DNA of 64,000 nucleotides from Macrostomum lignano (GCA_002269645.1 NIVC01002374.1:115628-179627), one strand, 5' to 3'; shown: positions 9,813-56,935, numbered from the stretch's first letter. Notes: a model not told the origin generated them from the sequence alone. Program-made: numbers and translations.

Positions 9813-9910
<98 letters not shown>

Positions 9911-11851: not shown

Positions 11852-13389
11852 TCAGCAAAACTGGTTACTATAAGTAGGCAGCGCGCAATTATGATTAGCA
11901 GAGCAGAAAGGTGTTAAAAATTAGCATAATCTTAAGCTCGAAACAGCTGCTTTGAGGAAGTTTGTCACTGTTAATAAATGAAAATGTGTATAGACTTAAT
12001 AAGCACTATTAAATAAGTAATTTGAATCTTAGTAAACAATGTAAAACCTGTAATTAGCACACGAGCTGGGCTAAGGGGCAAGCAGTCTGCAAAAGTATGC
12101 AACTGGGATTTCGTACACGGCGCAGACTTGATAAAAATTAAATTTGCAATTATATTAAATACATTAGAGATAATATAGAATATACATTATTTTCCATGGG
12201 AAAGCAAGTTCATTGTAAAGAATTGTAAAATGTAAACAATATATAGATACACATATATATATCAATATTTGAGGAAGTATTTTAACAGGCTTATTGGGGC
12301 CAGCATGTAACAGTGAAAGTTAATTCAAAGCTGAAATTATAATGAACTAGAAGAAAATTCCTTATTAATTTATTAAATTGACAATTAATATTAGTACATA
12401 GTAAAGGTAAACAATGAATGGTAATTTCGGGGAATGCAATGCACTGCGTGGCTGTGTGTTATCAATCACTTGTACAGTCTTGTCTCACTTCTCGCACAAA
12501 TAAAGAGCATTTTAAAAAAGCCGTTTGTATAATATAATATAATAAAGAGACACAATTGAGAAAGCACACAGAAGAGCTGGGTATAGTAAACAATAATTTT
12601 TAATAGTAAAAAAGCTGAAAAAGCAAACGTAAGCCTCTGGTTGAATTTTTTAGGGGAAAAAACGTAACCAAGGCGTAAGTATAGATGTACGCCAGGTGGG
12701 TAAATAAAATAGGGGGAAAAGTGGTTTTTTTAGCGGTGCAGCATGTTGAGACAAATATTAAAGTTCAGGGAGACTGGTGGGAGCAGCAGTGCAGTCTATC
12801 GAATCTTTCTAGCTAATTAATATACGCAAAAATACTTGCTTTTTGTGTTCGTTTTTTGTTGTTTTCTTTAAATCTTTAAAATCAAATAGCAGACAAATTT
12901 CAATGTAAAAAATAGCAACACTATAAGCAACACGTAGATAGAGGATGACTTCGAATCGCCTTGCAAAGGTGCTTAGTTGACATTGAATTGTCAAGCGCAC
13001 GAAATGATAAATGAACAAGAATTAATAAAAGGAAAATAAAATAGAAATAATAGGACAAACAGAGAGTTGGCATCTTGAGTTGCAAAATTGTTTTTGTTAT
13101 CGATAATGGTTTGGGTTGTAAACAGTAAAAATAGATTATAGACTTGAAGAAGATAGACAAGAATGAGACAAAAATGTTGCAAATATATTTTTTTGTTTTT
13201 TTTCAATATGGATAAATTTATATCCCTCACAAAAAGCGCAGTTTATCCGGAGCAATGAACGCCAGAAAAAAACTAAGAAAACATAAATCAGTCCCGACAG
13301 AGGGTCCGACAGGTAGAGTAGGATTTTGCCTGAAATTGGGACAGTGATTGTTTTTTAGTTCAATTGCTGGATGTACTACTAGGAATCTA

Positions 13390-27300: not shown

Positions 27301-28169
27301 GGCAGGCCACGTCATCAGCGCTGAGGCCTACTATCTAGAGCCAGTGCAGGAGGTGCGCTACTTACGTTGCAGACACCCTACCAGTAAGGACAGGCGAGGA
27401 CTCGGCACTACGTCAACTGTCTACTGGCTGATGCCGGCGCCCCGGACTCTGCTGGTGGTGCGGCCTTTGTTCGCATCCAAGCTTTGAAGTGCACAATTGA
27501 CGCTGCTTTTGTGAACTGGCAGCATATTCTGTTATTGTTTTTAGACCTATTTGGCATTTTGAACTCCCGCGTACCCCTTTCTAAAAACTGCTTCTAGAAC
27601 TTTCTGGATTCTAGAATGTTCTATTAACACATATAAATAATATACAGCATCCTAACACGCGATTACTTGACTATTTATTATTTTCCACATAGAAAACAAT
27701 CAAAGAAAAATTAAAGAAAATGAACCACTGCGTTTCATGCCTCATTTAGGCCTTATTTACATAATTCTACAGGTGCATGCAAGGGATTTTTGCCTGAAGG
27801 TAGGAAAATCCTAAATTAATACACCCTTGCCTTTGGTCAAAGTCGTCATATTTAAATGTTTAAGTCTTCCAGATTTGTTCAAGTTGTCATCATCATATGA
27901 CGATTTTGAATAAAACAATTTTGGCTGCATCCTAATAGGCCTAAGCAGCAATCTTCAAGTTTCGTTCATTTAATTATTTCCGGAATTATTTCGCCCTCTA
28001 TTCAAGGGTGGTGGGGGGGTGGGTGTTGGAATTAAACGAACGAAACTTGAAGATACCCGCCTAAGCTGCCATGGGGATAAGCTAAAAATTAAATTATCAA
28101 CATGGATCCGACTCATCCATGTGGATAAAATTGGAATTATTGGTATGGGACTAGGGGAGAAGTACTTCC
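24395..28169. mobile_element. MULE-like long-TIR element interrupted by the RTE insertion
   Basis: ~100-bp inverted repeats (GGAAGTGCTTATCCCC.. at 24395; ..GGGGAGAAGTACTTCC ending 28169) resemble the termini of the 59172 element. The TSD is not clean. Confidence 0.45.
25334..27490 (+). mobile_element. Degenerate non-LTR retrotransposon (RTE-like), APE endonuclease + reverse transcriptase
   Basis: APE motifs DVIALQE, CAYAP and IFGDLNA. RT motifs IIAIPKKPG..HRGICL, IDFRKAFD, GVLQGDTL..FLF and GYADDLAL. Post-RT RRRLQLAGHV is typical of RTE. Several stops and frameshifts. Confidence 0.9.
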
Positions 28170-34915: not shown

Positions 34916-35350
34916 AGACCTACCAGGCCACCCCGTAGACAACCATTAGTACTTCAGATGTTATTCTATATATTAGACCTATTATTTAGAATATTCTGTA
35001 TATTATTCCTACATTCTATATATTTTGTGTATTACATATATTCTATAAATTATATATTTTTCCATTTTCATTTTTCTATAATGTGGATAAACTTTATAGG
35101 ATATAGAATAATATTTTAATAATTCATGACTTACTCATAGCTTATTGTTTTTCATATAAAAGTTATAGTTTTTTGTATATTTAGAGTACAAGCATATTTA
35201 GCTATTGTATTTTCTATTGTCCGTTTCAGATTTGTTTTATTAATATATAGCTTGAATCTAAAAGAAGTTAGCAACTAATCCTGACATTACTCTGCTTTGT
35301 TAAAGTGCACTTCCTGTGTGCTAGATTGTTGGAGAAATCTACTTCACAGG

Positions 35351-36358
35351 ATGCTGTTATTGCTATTGATAAGCACTTCGCTATTGGCGGCATCGCCTGT
35401 CAGAGCTGTTTGCCATATTTGGCAGGACATTGTCAGCTATAGTTTGACCAAATCGCAGACAACTAGAGGTGGTATTTGTCACACTGACAAGCTGTTTCAA
35501 CAGACTGGCCAGCTGATGACGATTGCCATCACCTTGTACAGGTCTGACGAAATGTCGCTTTCTTATCGAAACAGTTTGCTGCACTTCAATGCCACTGGTG
35601 AGGATTCATTTGGTTTTGAATGTTAAATTGAGTGCGTGTCTTTTCACGAAGCCAATATCTGATTGTTTTTTTGCCTGAGTCAGCCCGAGTTATTCAGCTC
35701 TGCATTTTTGTTTTCGGTTTTTGCTTTTGCCTGGCAGTTAATAATTATGTATTTATATAGATTTATACTATCAACAATTGTATATTATCTGTGGTCTCAC
35801 CCCAAAGATTCTCAACCCATAGACTCTCACCCCTCGCTAAGGAGTCTCAGCCCTAAGATTCTCACCCTTCGCTAAGGAGTCTCAGCCCTAAGATTCTCAC
35901 CCCTCGCTAAGGAGTCTCAACCCTTAGACTCTCATCCATCGCTAGGGAGTCTCAACCCTAAGACTCTCACCCTTCGCTAAGGAGTCTCAGCCCTAAGATT
36001 CTCGCCCCTCTCCAAGGAGTCTCAACCCTAAGACTCTCACCCCTCTCAAAATCTCACTCTAACCTCAGTTTTTACCTATTTCTATGTTAAATGTTTAATC
36101 TCTTTTAAACTGCTCTTTTCGTGCTTGGATTGCTTTTATTATTAAGTAACGGTTTGAAACCGTTTTAAAACGCTTCTATTGTCTTTTTATGCGTGCCTGA
36201 GGCTGCTAATTTAACAAAAAGCTTTTGTTTAGCCACTGTTTTTTGAGAGGGCTTGTTTAATTTTATATTGAACTCGTTCTCGTCGATTTTTTTTACTGTT
36301 CTTCAATCGTTGTTTGCGTGTCTCACGCAGTTCCAAGGCCTGCTACCTAAGCGGGTAG

Positions 36359-36425
<67 letters not shown>

Positions 36426-39400
36426 CCAATCCGTGCATTTTATTTCAGGTGCATTGCGAGATACAAAAATTGTCAAATGTAAACCCGGTGCATTCTGGCT
36501 TGCCGGCTTTACTCTGTGAAAAGAAAGGGTTGGGGGGGGGGCGTTAGCTGTCACGGGTTTGTTCTCCGGGCAGCCCCGGTCCAGGAGAACTAATAATCAG
36601 AGTCTGGTGCGATATAACTTGTCTGCATTCACAAATCTTAGATGAAAATATCAATATTTATATTTAGAAATAAATTTTCTATATCTCCCGGAGCTACGAA
36701 AATTTTATTTTGGTTTTAAATGTGAGCAAAGTTTGTACAAAAAAAATCGTGTAAACAAAAATGACGTTGAAAAACGGGTAAGAGTTGTTAGTCCGGAGCT
36801 CTGGCTCTAGACCGCCTTGACCGGAGCTGACCTCGTCTTTCTGTTTGCTTTTCTTTTTAGTTCAGGTTGTCAGTTCACTGCTTGTAAGATAAGCGTTTTT
36901 TGGTCGCCGCTATTTCTAAATACGCTCGTAGCTCTTCAGCTCTTGTTTTGTTTCAGGCGCGTGTAGGTTTTGTAGTTAAACGAGTTCGGGGTCATAAAAA
37001 CTTTGCAATGGTTATAAATTTAGCGGCATACTATGAGTAAGAGCCAAACTATGAGCTATTGACTTATGCAGGTCGGCTCAAAGGGTAAACGTATCTGACT
37101 CTTGTATCGGAGTCGAGACTGGATCTCGGGACAATTCGGGACTGGATCTCGGGACAATCTGGACTGGATCTCGGGACAATCTGGACTGGATCTCGGGACA
37201 ATCTGGACTGGATCTCGGGACAATTCGGGACTGGATCTCGGGACAATTCGGGACTGGATCTCGGGACAATCTGGACTGGATCTCGGGACAATTCGGGACT
37301 GGATCTCGGGACAATTCGGAACTGAATCTCGGGACAATCTGGACTGAATCTCGGGACAATCTGGACTGGATCTCGGGACAATTCGGGACTGAATCTCGGG
37401 ACAATTCGGGACTGAATCTCGGGACAATCTGGACTGGATCTTGGGACAAGTCGGGACTGAATCTCGGGACAATCTGGACTGGATCTTGGGACAAGTCGGG
37501 ACTGGATCTCGGGACAATTCGGGACTGGATCTCGGGACAATCTGGACTGGATCTCGGGACAATTCGGGACTGGATCTCGGGACAATTCGGAACTGAATCT
37601 CGGGACAATCTGGACTGAATCTCGGGACAATCTGGACTGGATCTCGGGACAATTCGGGACTGAATCTCGGGACAATTCGGGACTGAATCTCGGGACAATC
37701 TGGACTGGATCTTGGGACAAGTCGGGACTGAATCTCGGGACAATCTGGACTGGATCTTGGGACAAGTCGGGACTGAATCTCGGGACAATCTGGACTGAAT
37801 CTCGGGACAATCTGGACTGGATCTCGGGACAATTCGGGACTGAATCTCGGGACAATTCGGGACTGAATCTCGGGACAATCTGGACTGGATCTTGGGACAA
37901 GTCGGGACTGAATCTCGGGACAATCTGGACTGGATCTTGGGACAAGTCGGGACTGAATCTCGGGACAATCTGGACTGGATCTTGGGACAAGTCGGGACTG
38001 AATCTCGGGACAATCTGGACTGGATCTTGGGACAAGTCGGGACTGAATCTCGGGACAATCTGGACTGAATCTTGGGACAAGTCGGGACTGAATCTCTAGA
38101 CAATCTGGACTGAATCTCGGGACAATTCGGGACCGAATCTCGGGACAATCTGGACTGAATCTCGGGACAATCTGGACTGGATCTTGGGACAAGTCGGGAC
38201 TGGATCTCGGGACAATTCAGGACTGGCCAGGAATGTTTCATTCAGCTCAGCTGATAATATAACCAAGTCATTTTTGCTTGGCAACTCATCCAGTATTCGG
38301 ACCGGTTGAATATTCCTCTGGGATTTCGAGAGTGCGTAGGCCCGTAGGGGGAAGGGTTTCATAACTAGCAATTTTCCCGTATTTAGCTTATATTCGCTCC
38401 TTACTGGGCGCTCTTTTGGCCTTTGGTAGAATCTGGCGATCTAAAGGGTGGAGATCCTCCTTCAGCTCCTCCCTGTGTGCGCGCCTGTACTGGTGGTGAA
38501 CGAACGACCTTGGCCTTCCCGCCACCCCCTCCTCCCTCTCCTGAACCGCTAAGCTTATTAGAGAGAGAGGGGAGGAGAGAGCGAGTCACATGACTGGATT
38601 TCCTATTTACAACCCCTCCTATCTCTGTTTTTCTTCTCTCTCCTCTTCTCTCCCCCCACTCCCCCATTGCCCTTGGCCTGTACTAGTTAGTGCGCCTGCA
38701 CTGATAAGTGAGTGCCCTCCTGGACCGCGTGACACTACCCGGGCGCTGAATCCCGTTTCATCGCATCCCATTCTATGCCATCCCACGCAAAATTTCTTTT
38801 TTTTTTGCTTAGCATTTCCGCTTTCTAGTGTAGTGCAATTTGCTTTTTTTCTTAGTTACTTTTTGCTTAGGCCATGGGGTCGGCAAGCTCTGTCCGCGGA
38901 CCACATGCGGCCCTCAAAGCCTCTCTATTCGGTCCTCGGGCCTTTAAAACTTCACAATAGCAATGTGACCCGCTTAAGGTTTGTGTCTCTTCTCAGCTGT
39001 CCCCTCTTCTCCCCTCTCATCCCTCGCCTCTCTTCTCTTCTCTCTTTCCTCTCTTCTCTCCTCTCTTCCGTCTCCCCTCTTCTCTCTCATCCCTCCCCTC
39101 TCTTCTCCTCTTCTCTCTTCTCCTCTCCCCTCTTCTCTCTCCCCTCTCCCCTCTCCCCTCTCCTCTCTTCTCTCTCGTCTGCTCCCTCCCCTCCCATCTC
39201 TTCTCTTCTCTCTTTCCTCTCTTCTCTCCTCTCTTCCGTCTCCCCTCTTCTCTCTCATCCCTCCCCTCTCTTCTCCTCTTCTCTCTTCTCCTCTCCCCTC
39301 TTCTCTCTCCCCTCTCCCCTCTCCCCTCTCCCCTCTCCTCTCTTCTCTCTCGTCTGCTCCCTCCCCTCCCATCTCTTCTCTCATCTCTCCGTTTTCTCTC

Positions 39401-42400
39401 TTCTCATCCCTCTCGTCTTTTTCTTCCTCACTTCTCTCATCTTTCTACTTCTCTCTCCTCTATTCCCTCTCCTTTCCACTCTCACCTGACCATGATCTTA
39501 GGCTTAGGCTCCAAAATATACACAAAAAACTAAAAAAAAAAAACATTTCGCTTCAAGGTTCACTTCCAATTCAGTCTGCAGGCATTTTTATGCTTTTTTA
39601 GCTCTTAATTTGGCAATGTTTTCATCTTTTTGGCTTCTCGATTTTGGCTTTTAGATTCAAGCACGATCAAGTGCGCATACCAGCTTGATATGCATATTGG
39701 TTGTCTCATATAAATAAGACAGTGTTCTTCTACTGTTGATTTTGTAAAAGTATGTCGCTAATGTTTTTTTGAAGCGATTTTGGGCCATTCAATTAATTTG
39801 TATAGAATGTGGTAAATTTGGTATCGGTAGGAGTAGAGTGTGGTAAATTTGGTATCGGTAGGAGTAGAGTGTGGTAAATTTGGGATCAGTAGGAGTAGAG
39901 TGTGGTAAATTTCGGATCGGTAGGAGTAGTGTGGTAAATTTGGGATCAGTAGGAGTAGAGTGTGGTGAATTTGGGATCAGTAGGAGTAGAGTGTGGTGAA
40001 TTTGGGATCGGTAGGAGTAGAGTGTGGTAAATTTGGGATCGGTAGGAGTAGAATGTGGTAAATTTGGGATCGGTAGGAGTAGTGTGGTAAATTTGGGATC
40101 AGTAGGAGTAGAGTGTGGTGAATTTGGGATCAGTAGGAGTAGAGTGTGGTGAATTTGGGATCGGTAGGAGTAGAGTGTGGTAAATTTGGGATCAGTAGGA
40201 GTAGAGTGTGGTGAATTTGGGATCAGTAGGAGTAGAGTGTGGTGAATTTGGGATCGGTAGGAGTAGAGTGTGGTAAATTTGGTATCGGTAGGAGTAGAGT
40301 GTGGTAAATTTGGTATCGGTAGGAGTAGAGTGTGGTAAATTTGGTATCTGTAGGAGTAGAGTGTGGTAAATTTGGGATCGGTAGGAGTAGTGTGGTAAAT
40401 TTGGGATCAGTAGGAGTAGAGTGTGGTGAATTTGGGATCAGTAGGAGTAGAGTGTGGTGAATTTGGGATCGGTAGGAGTAGAGTGTGGTAAATTTGGGAT
40501 CGGTAGGAGTAGAGTGTGGTAAATTTGGGATCAGGTGTGGGATCTCTGCAGTTAGTACTTGTTTTGTTAAAGGATCAGTGGGTACATTGAGTTGGTGTGC
40601 AAGCGGCATTTAATGGCTACATATTGCTGCCCCTTATCGCCTCTCCGCCTCAGGCTTCGCCGACTTCCGCGGCGACAAGCTGATCTTAGTGATTGCCAGC
40701 AACGCCGCCAAGCGCCGTATCGAACTGCGCATCGAAGATCCGGCCGCGTTGCGAGTGCCGTTGGAAATTTTCCACAACCTGCACCAGCCAGACGGCCTGA
40801 GCATCGGCAGCCCCCTGCCGCCAGGCCAGCAACTGACGGTGAATCGCTTCAGCCGTAGCATAGCCGGGCTGAATGACATCCTGAGCGAGATGGGCCGGCT
40901 TAGACCTGCTGCCTACGTCGGCGCCATCCTGGTGATCCCATATACCAATGCCGTTCCCGAGGCCAGGTTTAGCCGCGTTGCCGGCCGCTATCCCAGCCCG
41001 CCGCATGTTGACTCCGAGGCGGCCTGTCAGAGCCGCTCTAACTACAAGATGCTGCAGCCGTTGTTGCGGCATTTTGCCCAGGTTGCCAGACAGCCAGTCC
41101 CTGTGCAACTGTTCGACACTCGCAGCCAGATGGCCCAGCCGTTCTGCCGCCTCCAGCCCGATGCTACTATTATTGCTCTGCATTTTATCAATGGCGAACC
41201 GTTGGTTGCTATGGCAACTATTATTGTCAGCTTGATTGGCAGCGAGTCCACTTTAGTCCTGCTGGCCGATTGGGGCGCCGCCTGTCCGCGCCGATTGCGA
41301 CTGCGCGCCGATAATTCTCTGTTGGCGCCCAGCACCGCCGCTGGTCCCAATGCCAGTCTGGCCGTACGGCACAACTGCGCTGATGACACCGAGATCTGGG
41401 CCGAGTCCAACCTGCTAGACTCTGTCGGTGACCGAGTTCGAATCGAGTCGGTGCCCGAGCTGAGTCTGGCTAGTATTCGTTCGACTGGCCGGCTGCTGCG
41501 ACATTTTATGATTCAATCGGGGCGTTTCAGGAATAGCGATGTGAGTAACGTTTAGCTGTGGGGCAGCAACTCGTTGCTGTTTTAGATTTTTTAGAAATGT
41601 TGGATGTTTTAGATTAGATGTTTAGGCTTCAAACTGAATCTTACCACCCCTTACTGAAATCTCACCACCCCTTACTGAAATCTCACCACCCCTTACTGAA
41701 ATCTCACCACCCCTTACTGAAATCTCACCACCCCTTACTGAAATCTCACCACCCCTTACTGAAATCTCACCACCCCTTACTGAAATCTCACCACCCCTTA
41801 CTGGAATCTCACCATCCCACAGTGGAATCTCACCACCCCTAACTGGAATCTCACCATCCTACAGTGGAATCTCAACACCCCTTACTGGAATCTCGCCACC
41901 CCTTACTCGAATCTCACCATCCCACAGTGAAATCTCACCACCCCTTACTGAAATCTCACCACCCCTTACTGAAATCTCACCACCCCTTACTGAAATCTCA
42001 CCACCCCTTACTGAAATCTCACCACCCCTTACTGAAATCTCACCACCCCTTACTGAAATCTCACCACCCCTTACTGAAATCTCACCACCCCTTACTGGAA
42101 TCTCACCATCCCACAGTGGAATCTCACCACCCCTAACTGGAATCTCACCATCCTACAGTGGAATCTCAACACCCCTTACTGGAATCTCGCCACCCCTTAC
42201 TCGAATCTCACCATCCCACAGTGAAATCTCACCACCCTTACTGGAATCTCACCATCCCACAGTGGAATCTCAACACCCCTTACTCGAATCTCACCACTCC
42301 TTCCTTGAATCTCATACCGTTTACTGGAATCTCGCCACTCCTGACTGGAATCTCATTATACCCACTAGAATCTCAATATCCAACTGGAATCTCATTATAC

Positions 42401-45400
42401 CCACTAGAATCTCACTATCCAACTGGAATCGCCCTATCCAAACTGGAATCTCACTATGCCTACGGGAATCTCACTATCCAACTGGAATCTCACTATGCCT
42501 AGGGGAATCTCACTATCCAACTGGAATCTCACTATGCCTACGAAAATCTCACTATCCAACTGGAATCTCACTATCTAACTGGAATCTCACTATCCAACTG
42601 GAATCTCACTATGCCTAGGGGAATCTCACTATCCAACTGGAATCTCACTATCCAACTGGAATCTCACTATCCAACTGGAATCTCACTATCCAACTGGAAT
42701 CTCACTATGCCTAGGGGAATCTCACTATCCAACTGGAATCTCACTATCCAACTGGAATCTCACTATCCAACTGGAATCTCACTATCCAACTGGAATCTCA
42801 CTATCCAACTGGAATCTCACTATCCAACTGGAATCTCACTATCCAACTGGAATCTCACTATCCAACCGGAATCTCACTATCCAACTGTAATCTCACTATC
42901 CAACTGGAATCTCACTATCCAACTGGAATCTCACTATCCAACTGGAATCTCACTATCCAACTGGAATCTCACTATCCAACTGGAATCTCACTATCTAACT
43001 GGAATCTCACTATCCAACTGGAATCTCACTATCCAATTGGAATCTCACTATCTAACTCGAATCTCACTATCTAACTGGAATCTCACTATCCAACCAGAAT
43101 CTCACTATCCAACTGGAATCTCACTATCTAACTGGAATCTCACTATCCAACTGGAATCTCACTATCCAATTGGAATCTCACTATCTAACTCGAATCTCAC
43201 TATCTAACTGGAATCTCACTATCCAACCAGAATCTCACTATCCAACTGGAATCTCACTATCTAACTGGAATCTCACTATCCAACTGGAATCTCACTATGC
43301 CTAGGGGAATCTCACTATCCAACTGGAATCTCACTATCCAACTGGAATCTCACTATCCAACTGGAATCTCACTATCCAACTGGAATCTCACTATGCCTAG
43401 GGGAATCTCACTATCCAACTGGAATCTCACTATCCAACTGGAATCTCACTATCCAACTGGAATCTCACTATCCAACTGGAATCTCACTATCCAACTGGAA
43501 TCTCACTATCCAACTGGAATCTCACTATCCAACTGGAATCTCACTATCCAACCGGAATCTCACTATCCAACTGTAATCTCACTATCCAACTGGAATCTCA
43601 CTATCCAACTGGAATCTCACTATCCAACTGGAATCTCACTATCCAACTGGAATCTCACTATCCAACTGGAATCTCACTATCTAACTGGAATCTCACTATC
43701 CAACTGGAATCTCACTATCCAATTGGAATCTCACTATCTAACTCGAATCTCACTATCTAACTGGAATCTCACTATCCAACCAGAATCTCACTATCCAACT
43801 GGAATCTCACTATCCAACTGGAATCTCACTATCTAACTGGAATCTCACTATCCAACTGGAATCTCACTATCCAATTGGAATCTCACTATCTAACTGGAAT
43901 CTCACTATCCAACTGGAATCTCACTATCCAACTGGAATCTCACTATCCAACTGGAATCTCACTATCTAACTGGAATCTCACTATCCAACTGGAATCTCAC
44001 TATCCAATTGGAATCTCACTATCTAACTCGAATCTCACTATCTAACTGGAATCTCACTATCCAACCAGAATCTCACTATCCAACTGTAATCTCACTATCC
44101 AACCAGAATCTCACTATCCAACTGTAATCTCACTATCCAACTGGAATCTCACTATCCAACTGGAATCTCACTATCTAACTGGAATCTCACTATCCAACTG
44201 GAATCTCACTATCCAACTGGAATCTCACTATCCAACTCGAATCTCACTATCCAACTGGAATCTCACTATCCAACTGGAATCTCACTATCCAACTCGAATC
44301 TCACTATCCAACTCGAATCTCACTATCCAACTGGAATCTCACTATCCAACTGGAATCTCACTATCCAACTGGAATCTCACTATCCAACTCGAATCTCACT
44401 ATCCAACTGGAATCTCACTATCCAACTGGAATCTCACTATCCAACTCGAATCTCACTATCCAACTGGAATCTCACTATCCAACTCGAATCTCACTATCCA
44501 ACTGGAATCTCACTATCCAACTTGAATCTCACTATCCAACTGGAATCTCACTATCCAACTGGAATCTCACTATCCAACTCGAATCTCACTATCCAACTGG
44601 AATCTCACTATCCAACTGGAATCTCACTATCCAACTCGAATCTCACTATCCAACTGGAATCTCACTATCCAACTTGAATCTCACTATCCAACTGGAATCT
44701 CACTATCCAACTCGAATCTCACTATCCAACTGGAATCTCACTATCCAACTTGAATCTCACTATCCAACTGGAATCTCACTATCCAACTTGAATCTCACTA
44801 TCCAACTGGAATCTCACTATCCAACTTGAATCTCACTATGCCTAAGGGAATCTCGCCACCCCTAACTACATGTAAAGTAAGTCTCACCGTCGCAGCCCCC
44901 GCGCCCCACTTACACAACAGAGCGAGATCACTTTCGACGTGCAATTCAACCAGTGGGTCTTCAGGCCGATGGCCGCCCTGCAGACCAAGCGAATAGTCAG
45001 CGGCTTCACTGCGGACTCGGCCCTTGTGCACCTGGATAAATCCGTGCTGAACAACTGCACGCACGGGCTGACCAACCTGTCCATCGGTGACTGTCCGCTA
45101 ATTGACAACGGCACGCATCTCCACCGGCTGCTGCCCACAGTGGGGCTGCTCAGCGCCTGTCGGATGAGGCGTAGCGGCAACCACATGCTTGCCACTCTGT
45201 CAGCCAGCGTCCAGCTGCCCAGCAATGCCGGGCAATTCCTCATCTCGCTGCCATTCTCCTGGACTCTGCCAGCCGGGATTAGCGCTAATCTGCCCCTGAC
45301 TGAGCAAACTCGTGACAGTCGCGCTTCGCCAACATCGGCCAGTTCCGCGGCCAGCGCTGCGCTGGACAAATTTCCATTCCGGCTGACTGTCAGCCAGCTG

Positions 45401-46869
45401 CTGTTGGATGGCCACTCCAGAGCGATTGAACTGCAATCAACAAGATTGGAATATTTGTATAGCGGCGAGCTCATCCATTGCGAGCTGATTGTCCGGGGCT
45501 GCGGACAGCCGGTTCCGCTCGTGTCCGATGGTTGCACCAGGAGCGGCGCCCTCTGGCTCGGCCCGGGCGTCGCCGTGCCGCTGCTCCGACTGCCGTCCTC
45601 GCTGCCATCCAGGGTCTGCAGCGGCAGCGGCACCCGGATGGCCGTCGTCGCCTGCCGACTGGCCGTCTGCCGACTGGCCGAGCCTGAGCTAGCTGGCTTG
45701 ACATCCGACGAGGCCGTTGCTATGGGAATGCGGCGCTGTCGGCCGCAGGGCGAGGCTTGCGGCGAGGCTGCTGGACGAATTGCTGCTCGGAATCAAAGTC
45801 GCTTGGTTTTGGTGAGGGTCATACGCTAATTCTCCAACTCTCCTGACACATCGCCATTCTCAAATCCCATCCGCTTAGCATCGCCATTGAATGAGATCTC
45901 ACCCTCTTGGCACTGTCAGTCGATGAGATCTCACCCTCTTGACATAGTCGATGAGATCTCACCCTCTTGACATAGTCAACGAGATCTCACCCTCTTGAGA
46001 TGGGCAATGAGATCTATCACCCTCCTGACACTGTCAGTCAATGAGATATGACCCTCTTGACACTGTCAGTCGATGAGATCTCACCCTTTCGACACTGTCA
46101 GTCGATGAGATCTCACCCTTTCGACACTGTCAGTCGATGAGATCTCACCCTTTCGACACTGTCAGTCGATGAGATCTCACCCTTTTGACACTGTACGAAC
46201 ACCTAAACACGTACCAACTGTTACAATCATAAATGATCAGTTATAATCCTACAGTCTGATTTCCACCGCCATCAGAGCCGCAATCTGCCGCTGCTGTCAC
46301 TGGAAACCGAGGCCCTGCCGTTGAGCACATTGTTTGCCGGTGCCAATGCGTCAGTTGTTAACCATGCCAATAAGCACCAAGCCGCCACCGACGCGCCTCC
46401 GGCAGTTGCTGCCGAAGTTATTTCATCAACCCATGCCACAATGCTGGCAGCGTCGATGACTGCGGCTCAGCCTACTGCGGAGCCCCGACCGGGCACTGAG
46501 ACCCCGCGGCTTAGCCAGAGTGCCGCGGCTAAACCGGACAGACCAGCCTACCAACTGTGGTCGCATCTGCTAGCAGCCGTATTGGCTTTCATTGTAGGCA
46601 TTGGCACCATGGCGTCGCTCTGGGCTATTGTACATCGCCTGCGTTGGCAGCGTCGTCGGCATCGGCGACAGCTTCGCGAGTGTCGCTGCAGCAGCAGCAG
46701 CAACAGCGGCGGCGGCGGAGGCGGCGGCTGCGCTGTTGCCAAATCTTCAGCTGATCCTCTGCTCCGCTTGGGTGGCGGTGGCGGCGGCGCAGGCGGCGGA
46801 GGCCATTCCTGCGACTCCTCATCTGGCTTTGGCGACTGCGGCGGCGGCGGCGGCAGAGCGAAAGTTTAA
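35351..46869 (+). CDS. Uncharacterised type I transmembrane protein with signal peptide and divergent LRR/LRRCT-like ectodomain, ~872 aa, 4 exons
   Basis: Exons 35351-35597 (MLLLLLISTSLLAASPVRA signal peptide; donor G|gtgagg, phase 1), 40654-41540 (donor |gtgagt, phase 0), 44921-45811 (donor |gtgagg, phase 0) and 46276-46869 sum to 2619 nt in frame. Seven N-x-S/T sequons precede the TM segment LLAAVLAFIVGIGTMASLWAIV, followed by basic HRLRWQRRRHRR. The link from exon 1 across a 5-kb intron rests on phase match and topology. Confidence 0.72.
35810..36050. repeat. 35-bp minisatellite, ~7 copies
   Basis: CTCACCCCTCGCTAAGGAGTCTCAGCCCTAAGATT. Confidence 0.92.
36360..36423. repeat. (GA)n microsatellite
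   Basis: Direct reading. Confidence 0.97.
37115..38225. repeat. 19/20-bp minisatellite (GGACTGRATCTYGGGACAATCT / ..ATTCG / ..AGTCG)
   Basis: Direct reading; explains the overlapping 300-390 aa ORFs. Confidence 0.97.
38872..39490 (+). repeat. hAT-like terminus followed by CT-rich low-complexity DNA with an internal ~180-bp duplication
   Basis: CCATGGGGTCGGCAAG..CCACATGCGGCCC resembles hAT MITE ends. The partner end was not found. Confidence 0.5.
39805..40535. repeat. 31-bp minisatellite (GTGTGGTAAATTTGGGATCGGTAGGAGTAGA)
   Basis: Direct reading. Confidence 0.97.
41630..44850. repeat. 21-bp grading into 19-bp minisatellite (GGAATCTCACTATCCAACT), filling intron 2 of the TM gene
   Basis: Direct reading; 686-bp block duplication starting at 42611 and 43297. 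Confidence 0.97.
45890..46195. repeat. ~32-bp minisatellite (CTGTCAGTCGATGAGATCTCACCCTCTTGACA); second array at 47025-47457
   Basis: Direct reading. Confidence 0.95.
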
Positions 46870-49389
46870 AACTGAGGGCTCTAGAGGGAGGGATGGCCTA
46901 TCTGTGCAAGTGTAGAGCATTATTATTATTACATGATGAGGCGCTACTCTATATAATAGCGCCACCTTTTGCTCATTTGAAGATCATATGTTTGATCTAT
47001 TTGATCATATCGATTAGATCTCGACACTTGGCACTGTCAGTCGATGAGATCTCACCCTCTTGACACTGTCAGTCGATGAGATCTCACTCTCTTGGCACTG
47101 TCAGTCGATGAGATCTCACTCTCTTGGCCCTGTCAGTCGATGAGATCTCACCCTCTTGACACTGTCAGTCGATGAGATCTCACTCTCTTGGCACTGTCAG
47201 TCGATGAGATCTCACTCTCTTGGCCCTGTCAGTCGATGAGATCTCACCCTCTTGACACTGTCAGTCGATGAGATCTCATCCTCTTAGCACTGTCAGTCGA
47301 TGAGATCTCACTCACCCTCTTGGCACTGTCAGTCGATGAGATCTCACCTCTTAACACTGTCAGTCGATGAGATCTCACCCTCTTGACACTGTCAGTCGAT
47401 GAGATCTCACCCTCTTGACACTGTCAGTCGATGAGATCTCACCCTCTTGACACTGACTCTTGATCTCGAAAGTTTAAACTGAGGGCTCTAGAGGGAGGGA
47501 TGGCTTATATGTGCAAATGTAGAACATTATTATTATTACATGATGAGGCGTTAACCTATAAAAATAGCGCACTCGCAATCTGGCGATTCCCATTCATTGT
47601 GACTACCTCTTAGGTCTGTTTAGTATTTGAATTTGTTTGTTCTTAGGCGAGTAGTAATTGTGTGCAAGTGTACAGTAGTTGTTGTGTTAGATGTGTTGTA
47701 CATAACAAAGGGTGATTTTTCAACTAAACCTACCGATATGTCAGCTTCTAGTCTATCTGTCTGTCTGTCTGGCTTATGCCACGCGTTCTGTCTCCAAATC
47801 GTTATTCCAGGCTAAAAAACTGTTTCATTGCTCACTAATCAGTGCAGGTAAACCATTTTTAACGGTTAGAAATCTTTCTAATTTGAAGTTCCGATCAGGG
47901 TTTTGAACAGTAGGTTAGTGATTTTGTGAGAAATAGTGAATTGTTCTTGCTGTGCATCATTCTGTTCCATCCGATTAATTATGGAGATATTTTTATGCAA
48001 AGCAGCGGCGCGTCTTTTCCTTTTTCCCTCCAATGATTAACAGCTTCTGGATACCCCATAGGGGGCCAAACAAGTCAAAGAAATATTGAACGGCTTGGTC
48101 TCAAGGGGAGAGAAAATAACCCTAAGACAGCGGCGCGTGACTTGTCCGGCTTTCTGACTTGACCACGTTTTGTCCTCTGGGATTTAACCCCCCCCCTCCC
48201 CCTCACTTGCCGCTTTGAGGCAGTTCCGGCACTTGCTTGACTACAAGTGATTAGGGAGTGAATGTTAAGCAAAGCTGCCGTATTGAAATAATTACAGCTT
48301 TTTTATTTGCGTAAAAATGCAATTTAAACACACTTCTGCAGGGCTCCTAAATCACTAACTGCCTCAGTATATTAATTGTACTTTAAATTTTCTTGCTTTT
48401 ATTGCTTCTCTGCTTGCCTGTTATAAAGTTGTCAAATTTTAATAGGGACTCAAACTTGACTAAGTTTTTTACGCTTCAAAAATCATATTTTTCTGTTCGA
48501 ATAATTCTTTAATTATGTAAAAATCTATAAATCTTACAATTGCTTTGTTTCTTGTCTTGTAAATTTTATATTGTCTGCAACTGTGCACTACTTACTTGAC
48601 TAACAGTAGTATATATTGTATGCAAACCCGGCAATTCGCCGCAGCGTAACAATCAGGGATTTATTGTTTCATTTTTTCACCTGTCGATATCGGATTTGAA
48701 AAGAGGATTGTACACCAAGCACCCGCTCCCCAAGCCGCTGTGTATGTTTCATTCAACCCATAATTTTCCATTTCAATTTGTTTCTGTACAGGCCTGTACG
48801 CATCGTTGTCTTATATTGTCTTATAATTATGCAATTGATGTGTAGCCCGTATGTACTTTTCCCATAATAATCCTCTGCTGTTGCATAGGAATCTACCTCG
48901 GTTTTTGCCAGGCATAGCAACAAGCTGGATATCAAGTCGAGCTGAATTCCAGTGATCTATTTTTCAAATAATTATACCCCTACGCCACGTAAGGTTATGC
49001 AATTTTTCGAAGTCTACTACTTCTTTGTCAGAGTAGTAGTATGAAAGCAACACAGTTAAGAACACGTGTTTCAAACTGATTTGTGAGCAGACGATGAAAG
49101 GCTTGTTAGCCTAAGATTATGCATTCAAATTTATTGCATTACATTACTGGGTCGGCAGAAACGACAAACCGCAAAATAAAATTTCATGTAACAAACTGAC
49201 AGAATTACCAGAAAACAACGCTGACATAAGCACAAAATTGAGCATAAAAGTAAGTTAATGTGAATTTTTTGACAACAAATTCCTAATTACACGCGAGATT
49301 TAATTGTAGAAATTCAAAAATTTTTATTCTGGCTGCACGCACAGTATCTATGGGATGGTTGTTGTTTTCGGTATCAATTCGGTAGCTAT

Positions 49390-49705
49390 TCCGTATTTAT
49401 GGGCCACACCGTTGCTTTTCGGTATCTATGGGACACCGTTGCTATTCGGTATCTATGGGACACCGTTGCTATTCGGTATCTATGGGACACCGTTGCTGTT
49501 CGGTATCTATGGCCCACACCGTTGCTTTTCGGTATCTATGGGGCACTATGTTGCTATACGGTATCTATGGAACACCGTTGCTATTCGGTATCTATGGGAC
49601 ACTGACACACCGTTGCTATTCGGTCTCTATGGGACACCGTTGCTATTCGGTATCTATGGCACACACCGTTGCTAGCCAGTATCTAGGGGAACATGTTGCT
49701 ATTCG
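49390..49705. repeat. 27-bp minisatellite (CCGTTGCTATTCGGTATCTATGGGACA)
   Basis: Direct reading. Confidence 0.93.
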
Positions 49706-50295
49706 GTATCTGTGCTTTGCCATTGCTAAAAGTGACTACAAAGCAACCAAATTGGTACTAAAGAGGCTTTAACTGAATAAAAAATGCAGTGGCTGATAGC
49801 TTAGAGTGATAAATTTAAGTGTTGAAAAAGCCGCTAAACTCATTTATAAATAGCTACGAATGCAGCTGCATAACCTGATGAACTTTGCTTAGTGAGATGA
49901 GAAATGATTATACTGGGCCGTAATAACTAAAATAATGTTTAACAAACGAGTACAGACTGGGTTACTACCAATGATTTCTCGATAAAGAAAAGGCACAACA
50001 TGTTCTAATCAAAGTACTACTGATAAAAGAAAACAGTAGATAAGAGCGCGAGCGCGTCCCCCATTCAAAATATTTAACAATAGATATTCGGTATGCACTA
50101 CTTACCTGAGCAAAAAACGCAGGTAAGTAGAAAGTGACGAATAGAAGCAGAAAAAAATTGCGCGGAAATAGAAACTACGAGACAACCAGAAGTAGGAAGC
50201 TGCTAGAACTGATGGAGTTCCATGCTAAAAATGATACAGATCGCTCTTTAGGTGAATATTTTAATCCAACGTGACAGACAAACTCGATTCCCAAC

Positions 50296-50838
50296 TCAAA
50301 TCAGCCTGAGAACCTCGGCCGAGTCCAGGAACACTCGGCCGGAGAAGCCGCCAAGCGCCAGTAGAGAATCGGCGCCGAGCGCCACCAGACCCAGACCGGC
50401 GCGCGGCACCGCCAGCTGAGCGGAGGACGCCGACAAACAAGAAGCCGATGTCGCTTTCGCCGATGCGGCGAGATTCTCGCAGCCGACCAGCGCCGGCTGA
50501 TGGCCGTCGGAGCCGCCGACGAGCCACAGGTCGCCGGGGCCCAGCGAGGCCATGGCGGCGCCGCGCCTCGGACAGGCGAGCGACAGCGGCTGCGACTGCG
50601 TCGGCTCAGCGTCGTCCACGAAGTCGTCATCTGAGGAGGATCCCCGGCCGAGCATCAGGTCGGATGTGACCGGATTGGCGTCCCAGCGGTTGACGCGCGG
50701 ATCCCACACTTCTAGGCTGGCCAGACAGCCGCCGCTCCAGCCGTCCGAGCCGCCGGCAACCCACAGCTGGCCCTGGGATGGCGGATGGGGCAGCTGGGTG
50801 TTCGACTGTCTGTCTGTCTGTCTGACTGTCTGTCTGAC

Positions 50839-50875
<37 letters not shown>

Positions 50876-53800
50876 GCCTGTCAGTCTGTCTGTCTGTCTG
50901 TCTGTCTTAGTGTCTGTCTTAGTATCTGTCTTAGTGTCTGTCTTAGTGTCTGTCTTAGTGTCTGTCTGTCTGTCTGTCTATCTGTCTGTCTGCCTGTGTC
51001 CTAGTGATAGTTAATCTATCCTTCTGACTTTCTGCTATTGGCATGTCTAAGTGACTAACGGCAGGTAACACAGGTAAAATAGGAAAGAAATGAAATTTTA
51101 GAGACGACTCTAAAACGACGAGATGTCACGTTACAGGTCGCCACGTTAGAGTCGCCTGAGAGCCACTCTAAAGTGTTTTTATTGTTTGCGACTCTGGAGC
51201 CGCAGAGTCAGATCTGAGGCGTGCCAGAGACGCTGCAGAATGACTGATTTGCGTCTAAAGCGCATCTGAGTCACTTTCAATTACATCATTGTTTTTTGTC
51301 AATATTAAACTAACCTGGGCAACGCGCATCAATGTCGCGCTGCCAGTACAGCTATCAGATACTTGCCTGGTGAGCGGCCATGCAGCACTCGTTTCTGGGT
51401 TCGGACAGTCCCGGCATTGCCTGCCAGCGGCCGACGCGCGGGTCCAACCATTCGGCGTAGCGCACCGACGCTGCGCCGTATCGGCCGCCGACGGCAAACA
51501 CGGCGCCGTTTAGTTCGGCGACGGCGCAGCCGCTGCGGGCGCGCGACATCGGCGGGCCGGGCAGCCAATGGTTGCCGTCGAACTCTTCAATCTGAGCGAG
51601 CGAATGGCGAGGATTCAAGCCTCAGGGATCTGAGGAGGTGCTCAAGCTGAGGATCCAATGAGGAGGTGCTCAAGCTGAGGATCCAATGAGAAGGTGCTCA
51701 AGCTGAGGAGTGCATGATGAGGAGATGCTCAAGCTGAGGAGTGCATGATGAGGAGGTGCTCAAGCTGAGGATCCAATGAGAAGGTGCTCAAGCTGAGGAG
51801 TGCATGATGAGGAGATGCTCAAGCTGAGGAGTGCATGATGAGAAGATGCTCAAGCTGAGCAGTGCATGATGAGAAGATGCTCAAGCTGAGGAGTGCATGA
51901 TGAGAAGATGCTCAAGCTGAGCAGTGCATGATGAGAAGATGCTCAAGCTGAGGAGTCCATGATGAGAAGATGCTCAAGCTGAGGAGTACATGATGAGAAG
52001 ATGCTCAAGCTGAGCAGTGCATGATGAGAAGATGCTCAAGCTGAGGAGTCCATGATGAGAAGATGCTCAAGATGAGGAGTGCATATGCTCAAGCTGAGCA
52101 GTGCATGATGAGAAGATGCTCAAGCTGAGCAGTGCATGATGAGAAGATGCTCAAGCTGATGAGTGCATGATGAGGAGATGCTCAAGCTGAGGAGTGTATG
52201 ATGAGAAGATGCTCAAGCTGAGCGCTCAGCCTGTGACGCTGGGCCTCCAGCTCACCGTGGCCAACTCAGAGACGCCATCGGAGCCGCCGCAGGCGAATAC
52301 ACGGCAGGCGCCGGTTCTGCCAACAACAGCGGCTGCAGAGAAGCGACTACGCGGGCCGCCTGCTAGCTCGGGTCCGGGACGCCAGGCGCCGCTGTCCGGG
52401 CAGTAGATCTCGCAGCTGCGCAGACACTGACCGCGATTATAACCCCGGCAACCAGCAGTTTAAATCCGCCTTCGCTTTTATCGTCCAGTCTAACAGCGCC
52501 AAAGGAGGCCCTGGGCGACAGCATGTACGGGAAATGATCGCCGTGGCCGCTAGTAGACGCCGAGTTGTCGCTGTGAAATGAGACCACGCTGCTCTGGGCG
52601 GACGAGCGGCGTCGAACCCGGCACTGCTCCCGCAGCAGGGGGTCCTCGGCTAGGGGCAGCTGGCGCACGCTCATGAGACAGAGGGAGGGGCCGAGCCGGG
52701 CGAGCAGGAGCAGGCAGCTGGCGCCAGCCCGCTGCTGCGGCTGCTGATCGATTATTGACAGCACTCGAGAGGGCAGCTGACGTGAGGAGCGCTGGTTGTT
52801 GCTCTGGGATTTATTAGGGAAGAGAGGGAGGCTGAGGCTGTTGTATTTGAAAATCACAGTGTATCAGGCTGGCTCAGCAACTGACACTCTGGGAGGCTGG
52901 CTCAGCAACTGACACTCTGGGAGGCTGGCTCAGCAACTGACACTCTGGGAGGCTGGCTCAGCAACTGACACTCTGGGAGGCTGGCTCAGCAACTGACACT
53001 CTGGAAGGCTGGCTCAGCAACTGAGGATCTGGGAGGCTGGCTTAGCAACTGACACTCTGGGAGGCTGGCTCAGCAACTGACACTCTGGGAGGCTGGCCCA
53101 GCAACTGACACTCTGGGAGGCTGGCCTAGCAACTGACACTCTGGGAGTGGGAGGCTGGTCCAGCAACAGAGGATCTGGGAGGCTGGTCCAGCAACTGAGG
53201 ATCTGGAAGGCTGGCCCAGCAACTGAGGATCTGGGAGGCTGGCCCAGCAACTGAGGATCTGGGAGGCTGGCCCAGCAACTGACACTCTGGGAGGCTGGCC
53301 CAGCAACTGACACTCTGGGAGGCTGGCCCAGCAACTGACACTCTGGGAGGCTGGCCCAGCAACTGACACTCTGGGAGGCTGGCCCAGCAACTGAGGATCT
53401 GGGAGGCTGGGCCAGCAACTGAGGATCTGAGAGGCTGGCACAGCAACTGAGGATCTGGGATGCTGGCTCAGCAACTGACACTCTGGGAGGCTGGCCCAGC
53501 AACTGACACTCTGGGAGGCTGGCCCAGCAACTGACACTCTGGGAGGCTGGCCCAGCAACTGAGGATCTGGGAGGCTGGCCCAGCAACTGAGGATCTGGAA
53601 GGCTGGCCCAGCAACTGAGGATCTGGGAGGCTGGCCCAGCAACTGACACTCTGGGAGGCTGGCCCAGCAACTGACACTCTGGGAGGCTGGCCCAGCAACT
53701 GACACTCTGGGAGGCTGGCCCAGCAACTGACACTCTGGGAGGCTGGCCCAGCAACTGACACTCTGGGAGGCTGGCCCAGCAACTGAGGATCTGGGAGGCT

Positions 53801-56800
53801 GGCCCAGCAACTGAGGATCTGGGAGGCTGGCCCAGCAACTGAGGATCTGGGAGGCTGGCCCAGCAACTGAGGATCTGGGAGGCTGGCCCAGCAACTGAGG
53901 ATCTGGGAGGCTGGCCCAGCAACTGAGGATCTGGGAGGCTGGCCCAGCAACTGAGGATCTGGGAGGCTGGCCCAGCAACTGAGGATCTAGGAGGCTGGCA
54001 TAGCAACAGAGGATCTAACGCACCATGATCTTAGCGTGCATCCGACGCGAATCAATGTAATCCCTCAGCTGAGGCAGGTGGCTGGCCAGCTCAAGCTTCG
54101 CGTCGTCGGCGGCCGCAGCGTCCTCGGGACCCGAGGAGTCGGACAAAGCCACCGCAGCAGCCGCAGCGACAACAGCCGTGGCGAACTGCTGCTGCTCGCA
54201 GTCGATAACAGCCGAACCGTCTGAGGTCAGGTAGAGCAGGTGAACCTGGCCGGCGATGTGCGCCAGGAGTCGCTGAGCAGTGGCTGTCTGGCAGAAGTCG
54301 CCGAGAGTAGCGACAGCTTCGCCGTACTCCTTCGCCCCGCCGGAGCCAGTCACTGTATTCCGGTCCGCGTCCCCGTTGTCGCTCAAGTCCGTGTCGCTGT
54401 CGGACGAGTCGGAGTCGGAAGTGCGGCGGTGTCGATCCCGACAGTCCAGTATCAGACGGTGTAGGGTTCCGGCGAACCAGTCGCACAGCAGGTCGCCTAT
54501 AGCGGCTGAGCTGGCGGTCTCAGTGGAGCCGACTGCGAGTGAGGACAGGTGTGTGTGCTGCCAGCTCTTGTTTGTGTGCTGCCAGCTCTTGTTTGTGTAC
54601 TGCCAGCTCTTGTTTGTGTGCTGCCAGCTCTTGTTTGTGTACTGCCAGCTCTTGTTTGTGTACTGCCAGCTCTTGTTTGTGTGCTGCCAGCTCTTGTTTG
54701 TGTGCTGCCAGCTCTTGTTTGTGTGCTGCCAGCTCTTGTTTGTGTGCTGCCAGCTCTGAGCTCTTGTTTGTGTGCTGCCAGCTCTTGTTTGTGTGCTGCC
54801 AGCTCTGAGCTCTTGTTTGTGTGCTGCCAGCTCTTGTTTGTGCGCTGCCAGCTCTTGTTTGTGTGCTGCCAGCTCTTGTTTGTGTGCTGCCAGCTCTTGT
54901 TTGTGTGCTGCCAGCTCTTGTTTGTGTGCTGCCAGCTCTTGTTTATGTGCTGCCAGCTATAGTGAGTGTGCTGCCAGCTATAGTGAGTGTGCTGCCAGCT
55001 ATAGTGATTGTGCTGCCAGCTCTTGTTTATGTGCTGCCAGCTATAGTGAGTGTGCTGCCAGCTATAGTGAGTGTGCTGCCAGTTCTGAATCAGTCAGTGG
55101 GTAGGTACCTAGTGACACCAATACATTACATATTAAGGGAAACCTCTATAAAGTCACACGATATAATAATACTCATACGTGGATTTCGCATGGTATTCAT
55201 AGCATAACTTTCAACGGAAAGCAGCTAACAGAACCCAGTTTTTCAGGCAGTTTAAACCCAGTTTTAGTTGTAGGAGTTACCAGTAAATCGAATAGCGATA
55301 CATAAATCACATGCAGTCAGCTAAAGTAGCAATTTCACTCTCACTGCTAGTGCCTGCTATGCCATCCCAAAGCGGTGTAGCTAGGAAGGCAACAAGTAAA
55401 CATGTTATTGCGCACTTTTATAATCAAGTCGCGACTCGTGACTTAAGAGAAGTTTGTTAATTTTAAAGATATTAAGAATTCATATAGATTGCGTAACTCT
55501 TACCTAGCAGGTCAACTTTTATCTTAGGCAGCGGACAATCCAAGTCCAAGTCTACTATCTCTGCCAAATGCTGCACAATGTAGTTATCGATACCGTCAAC
55601 TAGGCTGTCAAAGTCGGTTACTTGGGAGCGAAGCTCTGAAATATGGCACAGAGTTTTGGGAGAATTCATACAGATAGTATTAGAGGAATTCATGCCGGAT
55701 TACCCGTGACACCTGTGGGATTTTAGATCAATGGGGGATTAGTGGCAACACCTGTGGGATCTGATATCCATGGGAGATTAGTAGCGAGACACCTGGGGGA
55801 TCTGAGATCTATAGGAGATTAGTGGCGAACACCTGTGGGATCTATGGGAGATTAGCGACGCTTGTGGGATGAGATCCCTGGCTATGGGAGATTAGTGGCG
55901 ACACCTGTGGGATCTGAGATCCATGGGAGATTAATGACGACACCTGGGGGATCTGAGATCCATGGGAGATTACTGACGACACCTGTGGGATCTGAGATCC
56001 ATGGGATATTAAAGGCGAACATCTGTGGGATCTGAGATCCATGGGAGATTAGTGGCGAGACACCTGGGGGATCTGAGATCTATAGGAGATTAGTGGCGAA
56101 CACCTGTGGGATCTATGGGAGATTAGTGGCGACACCTGGGGGATTTGAGATCCACGGGAGATTACTGGCGACACCTGTGGGATCTGAGATCCATGGGATG
56201 TTAAAGGCGAACATCTTTGGGATCTGAGATCCATGGGAGATTAGTGGCGAGACACTTGGGGGATCTGAGATCCATGGGAGATTAGTGGCGAGACACCTGG
56301 GGGGATCTGAGATCCATGGGAGATTAAAGGCGAACACCTGTGGGATCTGAGATCCATGGGAGATTAGTGGCGACACTAATGTGAGATCTGAGATCCATGG
56401 AGATTAGCGACACCTGGGGGATCTATAGGAGATTAGCGACACTAGTGGGATCTGAGATCCATGGGAGATTAGTGGCGACATGTGGGGGAGCTCCAAGATG
56501 CACAATCAAGCTGCGGAAAAGAAGGCACAAAAGCAGAATACACCAACCAAGCACGTTGCGCGGCTTCAACCCAGCCAGTAGTGTCTGGGCGCAGTACTTG
56601 ACCAGAACAGGCAGGCGTAGGTAGCAGGCTGCCGAGTGCAGCTGGGCCAGAGCCAGAGGCTCCATCGAGCCGGGATCCGGCAGGCAGCCGGTGTAGACAA
56701 AGTGCAGCGCATGGCTAAACGCATCAGGCGTGAGATGACGCGGTAGGTTAAAGTGTCCACAGTTTGGTTCCTCAGTTAGCAGGCGCATGAAATGCGGTGA

Positions 56801-56935
56801 CGCCGCCGCTAGAACGCATTTGTGCGCCAGAAAGCGGCGCCCGTGAACGCTAATCTGCAGATCGCAAAACATGCCCTCCTCGCGTAGCTTGGCCAGCTTG
56901 GCCAGGTGATCGGGTATGCCACTAGGCTCAGACAT
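50296..56935 (-). CDS. IVNS1ABP: BTB-BACK-Kelch protein, IVNS1ABP/NS1-BP-like, ~759 aa if the 1-nt frameshift at 52443-52446 is corrected
   Basis: Exons 56935-56548 (BTB: [27 protein letters not shown]), 55635-55504 (BACK: [21 protein letters not shown], resembling IVNS1ABP VDAYIQEHLLQI..LPRLKLEVM), 54532-54024, 52803-52256, 51591-51367 and 50772-50296. Six kelch repeats, including [20 protein letters not shown] and [14 protein letters not shown]. Phases 1,1,0,0,0 are consistent. Confidence 0.82.
50806..50995. repeat. (CTGT)n microsatellite, Kelch gene intron 5
   Basis: Direct reading. Confidence 0.95.
51625..52222. repeat. ~31-bp minisatellite (TGCTCAAGCTGAGGAGTGCATGATGAGAAGA), Kelch gene intron 4
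   Basis: Direct reading. Confidence 0.95.
52865..54015. repeat. 28-bp minisatellite (GGGAGGCTGGCCCAGCAACT + GAGGATCT or GACACTCT), Kelch gene intron 3
   Basis: Direct reading. Confidence 0.97.
54550..55085. repeat. 21-bp minisatellite (GTGTGCTGCCAGCTCTTGTTT), Kelch gene intron 2
   Basis: Direct reading. Confidence 0.95.
55715..56480. repeat. ~39-bp degenerate minisatellite (GATCTGAGATCCATGGGAGATTAGTGGCGACACCTGTGG), Kelch gene intron 1
   Basis: Direct reading. Confidence 0.93.

Follow-up and report, generated by a model that had tools for sequence, protein, structure and literature searches.

What kind of protein is encoded by a gene whose coding segments are kept apart by long tracts of satellite DNA? 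The question is raised by positions 35351–46869 of a 64,000-nucleotide stretch of the Macrostomum lignano genome (NIVC01002374.1:115628-179627, assembly GCA_002269645.1; one strand, and hereafter 'the window'), where a reading made from the sequence only had proposed an orphan cell-surface receptor with leucine-rich repeats (LRR). The gene is one that is already annotated and deposited, Mlig026668 (homeologue g1), and its product is a lineage-restricted type I, single-pass membrane glycoprotein. The nature of the ectodomain is a more delicate matter. The explanation we favour, and to which we give an even chance, is that it is beta-rich and disulfide-bonded and includes a very divergent zona-pellucida (ZP) module, and that it is not an LRR solenoid. 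The outcome is then in part a re-derivation of a deposited gene model, with the family guess moved from LRR proteins to membrane proteins with a ZP module, of which this one would probably be a very divergent example.

The gene itself is straightforward. Four plus-strand exons (35351..35597, 40654..41540, 44921..45811 and 46276..46869), each with the AG|exon|GT context, sum to 2619 nucleotides in a single open frame that specifies 872 amino acids followed by TAA. The translation matches GenBank PAA58445.1 (BOX15_Mlig026668g1) at every residue (100% identity), and differs by one amino acid from PAA79292.1 and by 20 from PAA76872.1, so that the in-frame joining proposed from the sequence, with its canonical splice sites, was right. 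As the Mlig_3_7 annotation was built on a genome-guided RNA-seq transcriptome (PMC5730564), the three splice junctions have indirect RNA support, which comes through that annotation only. A homeologous locus, on NIVC01000642.1, has the same four exons and the same splice sites. Only 4 of the 2619 exonic nucleotides differ between the two copies (99.85% identity), and three of the four changes are synonymous, whereas in the long blocks that align across the locus identity is ~96%, and the satellites are present in different copy numbers; this comparison of exon with long-block divergence indicates that the exons are under constraint. The description of all four exons as GC-rich holds for exons 2–4 (60–63%) but not for exon 1, which at 45.7% is similar to the introns. 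An older gene model, UniRef A0A1I8JKM5 (compared with window positions 44921-54700), joins exons 3 and 4 to out-of-frame, repeat-rich downstream sequence and bears the name 'Protein kinase domain-containing protein'; this fusion is probably an annotation artefact. A full-text literature search for the gene identifier returned no paper, and the identifiers Mlig026668, Mlig006404 and Mlig027385 are absent, as regards expression data, from the supplements of the M. lignano papers that were checked.

How is the protein laid out on these exons? Exon 1 (35351..35597), which ends in phase 1, provides the ATG, a hydrophobic N-terminus (MLLLLLISTSLLAASPVRAV) with a signal peptide of amino acids (aa) 1–~20, the conserved cysteine pair C21/C43 and the start of an FNATGF motif. 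Exon 2 (40654..41540; aa 83–378) encodes the remainder of the N-terminal ectodomain region, with the conserved C207, C247, C293 and C324, and exon 3 (44921..45811; aa 379–675) the putative divergent ZP module. In exon 4, the first part (46276..46557; aa 676–769) contains a possible external hydrophobic patch (EHP; LPLLSL) and an Ala/Thr/Pro-rich stalk. It is followed by the transmembrane (TM) helix (46558..46632; aa ~770–794, WSHLLAAVLAFIVGIGTMASLWAIV), which is the single strong hydrophobic segment, and then by the cytoplasmic tail (46633..46869; aa ~795–872), which opens with a poly-Arg stop-transfer run (RLRWQRRRHRRQLR), continues as Gly/Ser/Cys-rich low-complexity sequence and ends RAKV before the TAA. 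The ectodomain has 17 cysteines, and there are seven N-x-S/T sequons (N80, 315, 423, 430, 441, 669 and 699). The signal peptide, the seven sequons, the stalk, the single TM helix, the basic run and the tail had all been noticed from the sequence, and all are there. The protein lacks a kinase, a TIR or any other catalytic domain, and at E≤10 Pfam gave just TM or low-complexity noise for the whole protein, for its fragments and for the paralogue described below. The N-terminal region shows no good sign of an internal duplication: the best local match, aa 81–111 against 270–303, is in register and has 32% identity, but its E is 0.42.

How far does the family extend? A HMMER search of 1.84 billion representative proteins yielded four matches: the protein itself, A0A1I8JKM5, a paralogue and a fused model of that paralogue. 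No homologue outside M. lignano was found among them, and word-indexed searches that started from the full protein, the full alignment or a trimmed alignment of the ectodomain brought up nothing beyond the protein itself and the old fused model. Within the databases covered, the family is confined to M. lignano, and the lineage-specific character first ascribed to the protein, with neither TIR nor kinase domain, is borne out. The paralogue, BOX15_Mlig027385, is 922 amino acids long, has three homeologues and was the only other family found. It is 29% identical to Mlig026668 over aa 42–682 and has the same layout of signal peptide, TM helix, poly-Arg run and Gly-rich tail; the LWSH..A..W core of the TM helix and the FNATGF.D.RG motif are conserved between the two. 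Fourteen of the ectodomain cysteines are common to both (21, 43, 207, 247, 293, 324, 424, 458, 565, 583, 623, 628, 651 and 658). Its gene, within the stretch 3001-12911 of the NIVC01000686.1 locus, also has four exons. Intron 1 is shared, at the same position and in phase 1, within the invariant FNATG|F, but introns 2 and 3 lie elsewhere, indicating that introns were gained or lost after the duplication.

Is the ectodomain an LRR solenoid? Under that reading a solenoid closed by an LRRCT cap would be followed by a stalk and a TM helix, as in adhesion or immune-type LRR receptors, with which the protein does share type I topology, glycosylation and a cysteine cluster ahead of the stalk. The Leu-rich strings that were quoted for it, e.g., LTNLSIGDCPL, exist, but the LxxLxLxxNxL core occurs once in the ectodomain (aa 21–770) against 0.53±0.72 times in 1000 shuffles, i.e., no more often than by chance; there is no repeat periodicity, and the strings are not kept as LRR motifs in the paralogue. 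Pfam LRR, LRRNT and LRRCT are silent even at E≤10, and neither the PDB sequence matches nor the top Foldseek PDB matches include an LRR protein. AlphaFold 2 (AF2) models contain no solenoid, though their confidence is low (predicted local distance difference test, pLDDT, 33.7 for the full-length protein and 30.3 for aa 379–692). The cysteine cluster that had been taken for an LRRCT-like cap comprises 94 amino acids with 6–8 cysteines, far longer than expected for such a cap, and its spacing is instead that of a ZP-C subdomain. The LRR reading is effectively refuted, and we leave it next to no probability. The idea that the terminal AKV is a PDZ-binding motif is likewise weak, because the paralogue ends GAA.

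What, then, favours a ZP module? UniRef names the three Mlig026668 homeologues 'ZP domain-containing', and applies that name also to a fused model that holds the C-terminal two-thirds of Mlig027385; the label is automatic, and our analysis neither proved nor refuted it. With the exact protein in GenBank and this name attached to it, the absence of any annotated family, as first supposed, holds only in part. The six cysteines of the cluster (45479..45760; C565, C583, C623, C628, C651 and C658), all of them conserved, correspond in a post-hoc spacing test to the ZP-C signature C5, C6, C7, Ca, Cb and C8. The successive distances are 18, 40, 5, 23 and 7 in Mlig026668 and 19, 34, 5, 23 and 7 in the paralogue, compared with 21, 45, 5, 13 and 7 in human TGFBR3 and 21, 39, 5, 7 and 4 in UMOD. 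Such a chain occurred in 4 of 20000 ectodomain shuffles, a figure to be read with the test being post hoc, its windows being set around the UMOD, TGFBR3 and Mlig026668 spacings, its null being uniform, and the paralogue falling just outside the C6–C7 window. The comparison sequences (UMOD, GP2; chicken, medaka and mouse ZP3; human, rat and mouse TGFBR3) were verified against the PDB. By eye the local contexts are also ZP-C-like (LVSDGC/LVAKGC; RLLIRLAEF..SLIARCQFNPC vs RFSVQMFRFAG..VYLHCEVYLC). Within exon 3 the candidate ZP-N would be aa ~380–495, with C424 and C458, and after a Ser/Ala-rich linker the candidate ZP-C would be aa ~530–665. The putative module stands directly before the stalk, the TM helix and the short tail, as it does in membrane ZP proteins. 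Compared with uromodulin/GP2, CUZD1 and DMBT1, the protein is alike in its signal peptide, in a ~290-aa module right before stalk, TM helix and short tail, in the six-cysteine ZP-C-like spacing with its C-x4-C pair, in heavy N-glycosylation and in the all-beta character that the low-confidence AF2 models (pLDDT 33.7 and 30.3) predict for the ectodomain.

A good deal weighs on the other side. There is no detectable sequence similarity to those same proteins. Pfam Zona_pellucida (PF00100) and CUB are silent at E≤10 for Mlig026668, for Mlig027385 and for fragments; phmmer and hmmsearch of the PDB, with the protein and with profiles, retrieved no ZP chain and nothing relevant; hhalign against ZP alignments of UMOD/GP2, the three ZP3 sequences and TGFBR3 gave probabilities all below 1%; Needleman–Wunsch z-scores are <1; and when scored with a home-made ZP hidden Markov model alongside shuffled decoys, the protein took rank 90 of 514. 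With Foldseek the AF2 model of aa 379–692 matches just generic Ig/FN3 folds at E≥0.18, with uromodulin filaments no higher than 9th, 19th and 29th in the list, at E-values of 0.4–0.9. The candidate ZP-N (aa 380–495) retains two of the four canonical cysteines (C424 and C458), the positions of C1 and C4 being without cysteine in both paralogues, and the restriction of the family to M. lignano is a further contrast with the known ZP proteins. No RX[KR]R occurs in the segment from C658 to the TM helix, and the corresponding segment of the paralogue is without a basic cluster; because a conserved furin-type site is lacking, polymerisation is doubtful. Ahead of the helix, a conserved LPL(L/F) patch could be an EHP. 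An argument that exon 3 by itself constitutes one module had to be dropped, introns 2 and 3 of the paralogue being elsewhere, and the ZP label, as an automatic database name, does not count as a tested result. All told, a ZP module in the product is probable rather than demonstrated.

Could the ~360 amino acids that precede that module reveal what the protein is? One proposal is a co-receptor of the betaglycan/endoglin type, in which the N-terminal 360 amino acids would be an orphan domain made of two intertwined beta-lobes, ahead of ZP, TM helix and short tail, and in which, by analogy, a ligand of the TGF-beta/BMP family would be captured and presented to signalling receptors. That order is the one described for betaglycan and endoglin (PMC11865472), and the sizes agree as well: an N-terminal domain of ~340–360 amino acids, then ZP, TM helix and a short non-catalytic tail. 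The five best Foldseek PDB matches of the full-length model, over 297–345 columns, are all orphan domains, from rat and zebrafish betaglycan (9fdy_C with E of 1.2e-3, 6mzp_A, 9fk5_E and 6mzn) and human endoglin (5hzw_A, 1.9e-3), their E-values lying between 1.2e-3 and 5e-2, after which comes a match at E=0.68; the ZP-only model (aa 379–692) does not match orphan domains. The conserved C21, C43, C207 and C247 can be set beside endoglin 30, 53, 182 and 207 and human TGFBR3 28, 52, 197 and 221, a four-cysteine pattern which in endoglin forms the two inter-lobe disulfides 30–207 and 53–182 (PMC5464963). In addition, the last two ZP-C cysteines are 7 apart as they are in TGFBR3 (CVPPDEAC against CRPQGEAC). 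Two independent weak signals thus point to one known layout. However, the model has a pLDDT of 33.7, with TM-scores of 0.11–0.29 and a root-mean-square deviation of ~20 Å, and in a comparison with the viral BFVD library it matches unrelated predicted structures at E as small as 1e-6, so its Foldseek E-values are not trustworthy; the caution is a general one for E-values that come from models of pLDDT ~30 without such a control. At the sequence level there is no support: hhalign against a betaglycan orphan-domain alignment gave 0.2%, the Needleman–Wunsch z was ~0 and hmmsearch of the PDB was empty. The tail of Mlig026668 is Gly-rich and not Ser/Thr-rich, its terminal AKV is not kept in the paralogue, and the N-terminal fragment of that paralogue carries the competing UniRef label 'CUB'. 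Betaglycan and endoglin are described from vertebrates only, and endoglin is reported only in amniotes (PMC5464963). That these two flatworm proteins, Mlig026668 and its paralogue, are related to the type III TGF-beta co-receptors, with orphan domain, ZP and TM helix, is in our judgement unlikely, though still a lead. Were it true, the co-receptor architecture would be older than vertebrates and have diverged past sequence recognition, and a counterpart in this transgenic, regeneration-competent flatworm model would allow the origin and ancestral role of these co-receptors to be tested.

We consider equally improbable a CUZD1/DMBT1-like membrane protein, in which one or two degenerate CUB sandwiches (aa ~21–200 and ~207–345) would precede the ZP module and whose role, again by analogy, would be that of a matrix or adhesion protein of apical surfaces or secretory granules. 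A CUB-CUB-ZP-TM arrangement is known from CUZD1, UniRef gives the name 'CUB domain-containing protein' to the 447-aa N-terminal fragments of Mlig027385, C207, C247, C293 and C324 follow the order of the four cysteines of a canonical CUB domain, and C21–C43, with a spacing of 22, resembles the first CUB disulfide. Yet Pfam CUB (PF00431) is silent at E≤10 for all fragments, and there is no CUB structure among the top 50 Foldseek PDB matches, although CUB structures are expected to be well represented in the PDB. The spacings of 40, 46 and 31 are each 10–18 residues above the canonical, and the first lobe is without the usually conserved second CUB disulfide. Are the ZP, CUB and orphan-domain likenesses perhaps all spurious, the product of an automatic profile false positive and of noise from poor models, so that this is a Macrostomum-specific ectodomain with a fold or folds of its own? 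In keeping with that, each test of sequence or fold significance that was run came out non-significant, AF2 could not fold the protein (pLDDT 33.7 and 30.3), and among the 1.84e9 representatives no homologue is from outside M. lignano. But the ZP name is attached to two gene models that are only 29% identical, both paralogues keep the six-cysteine ZP-C spacing, which shuffled sequences seldom show, and the module sits relative to the TM helix as is usual in ZP proteins. A private fold is the least probable of these three proposals, and well below the other two.

If the favoured explanation, a divergent ZP-module membrane glycoprotein, is correct, how might it work? After the signal peptide a two-lobed N-terminal region of ~360 amino acids (aa 21–378) with three conserved cysteine pairs would be followed by the very divergent ZP module from exon 3 (aa 379–~665), the Ala/Thr/Pro-rich stalk, the TM helix and a 78-aa non-catalytic tail. 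By analogy with CUZD1, DMBT1, betaglycan and endoglin, the N-terminal beta-domains would bind an extracellular partner, and the ZP module would provide a rigid juxtamembrane stalk or scaffold, possibly one that dimerises. The protein would be kept at the membrane as an adhesion protein or co-receptor and not released to polymerise. Because no furin-type site is conserved between the paralogues from the last ZP-C cysteine to the TM helix, it probably does stay membrane-anchored.

The surroundings of the coding segments deserve mention. One base 5′ of the start ATG is an AG acceptor (TTCACAG|G; window 35344-35353), and as spliced-leader (SL) trans-splicing affects many M. lignano mRNAs (PMC5730564) it may be an SL trans-splice site. 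In the 530 nucleotides 3′ of the stop codon there is neither AATAAA nor ATTAAA. The characterisation of the locus as satellite-filled is borne out for the introns by mapping with Tandem Repeats Finder. Intron 1 (35598..40653; 5056 bp, GT..AG) is 51% tandem repeats, with arrays of a 35-bp unit, (GA)n, a 45-bp unit x24.6, a CT-rich 168-bp unit and a 31-bp unit x23.7. Of intron 2 (41541..44920; 3380 bp), 95% is a single 19/21-bp satellite in >140 copies, and 66% of intron 3 (45812..46275; 464 bp) is a 32-bp satellite. Arrays of this last repeat (ATGAGATCTCACCCTCTTGACACTGTCAGTCG) bracket exon 4, being present at 45891-46194, in intron 3, and again at 47027-47455, just 3′ of the stop. Since simple and tandem repeats constitute 15% of the genome (PMC5730564), satellite-filled introns are ordinary for M. 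lignano. The arrays give rise to long open reading frames (ORFs), e.g., in three frames at 37056-38241 in intron 1, and in the 45-bp and 19-bp arrays; these were considered as genes and rejected as by-products of the repeats. An Rfam scan of the window gave no match.

To the 5′ side, on the minus strand at 14290-20214, is a TRIM-NHL-like gene with an NHL-repeat ORF (14290-14946) and a RING/B-box-like ORF (19687-20214); the corresponding upstream neighbour at the homeologous locus on NIVC01000642.1 has Pfam zf-B_box and NHL. Between it and Mlig026668, on the plus strand at 25358-27487, are non-LTR-retrotransposon-like ORFs with endonuclease-like and reverse-transcriptase-like stretches. The 3′ neighbour, on the minus strand at 50296-56935, is a BTB-Kelch gene, whose BTB ORF (56423-56935) and kelch ORF (50296-50709) are separated by repeat-derived ORFs at 53014-54006 and 54549-55207, which suggests that tandem repeats are inside this gene also. 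Its counterpart on NIVC01000642.1 has Pfam BTB/Kelch on record.

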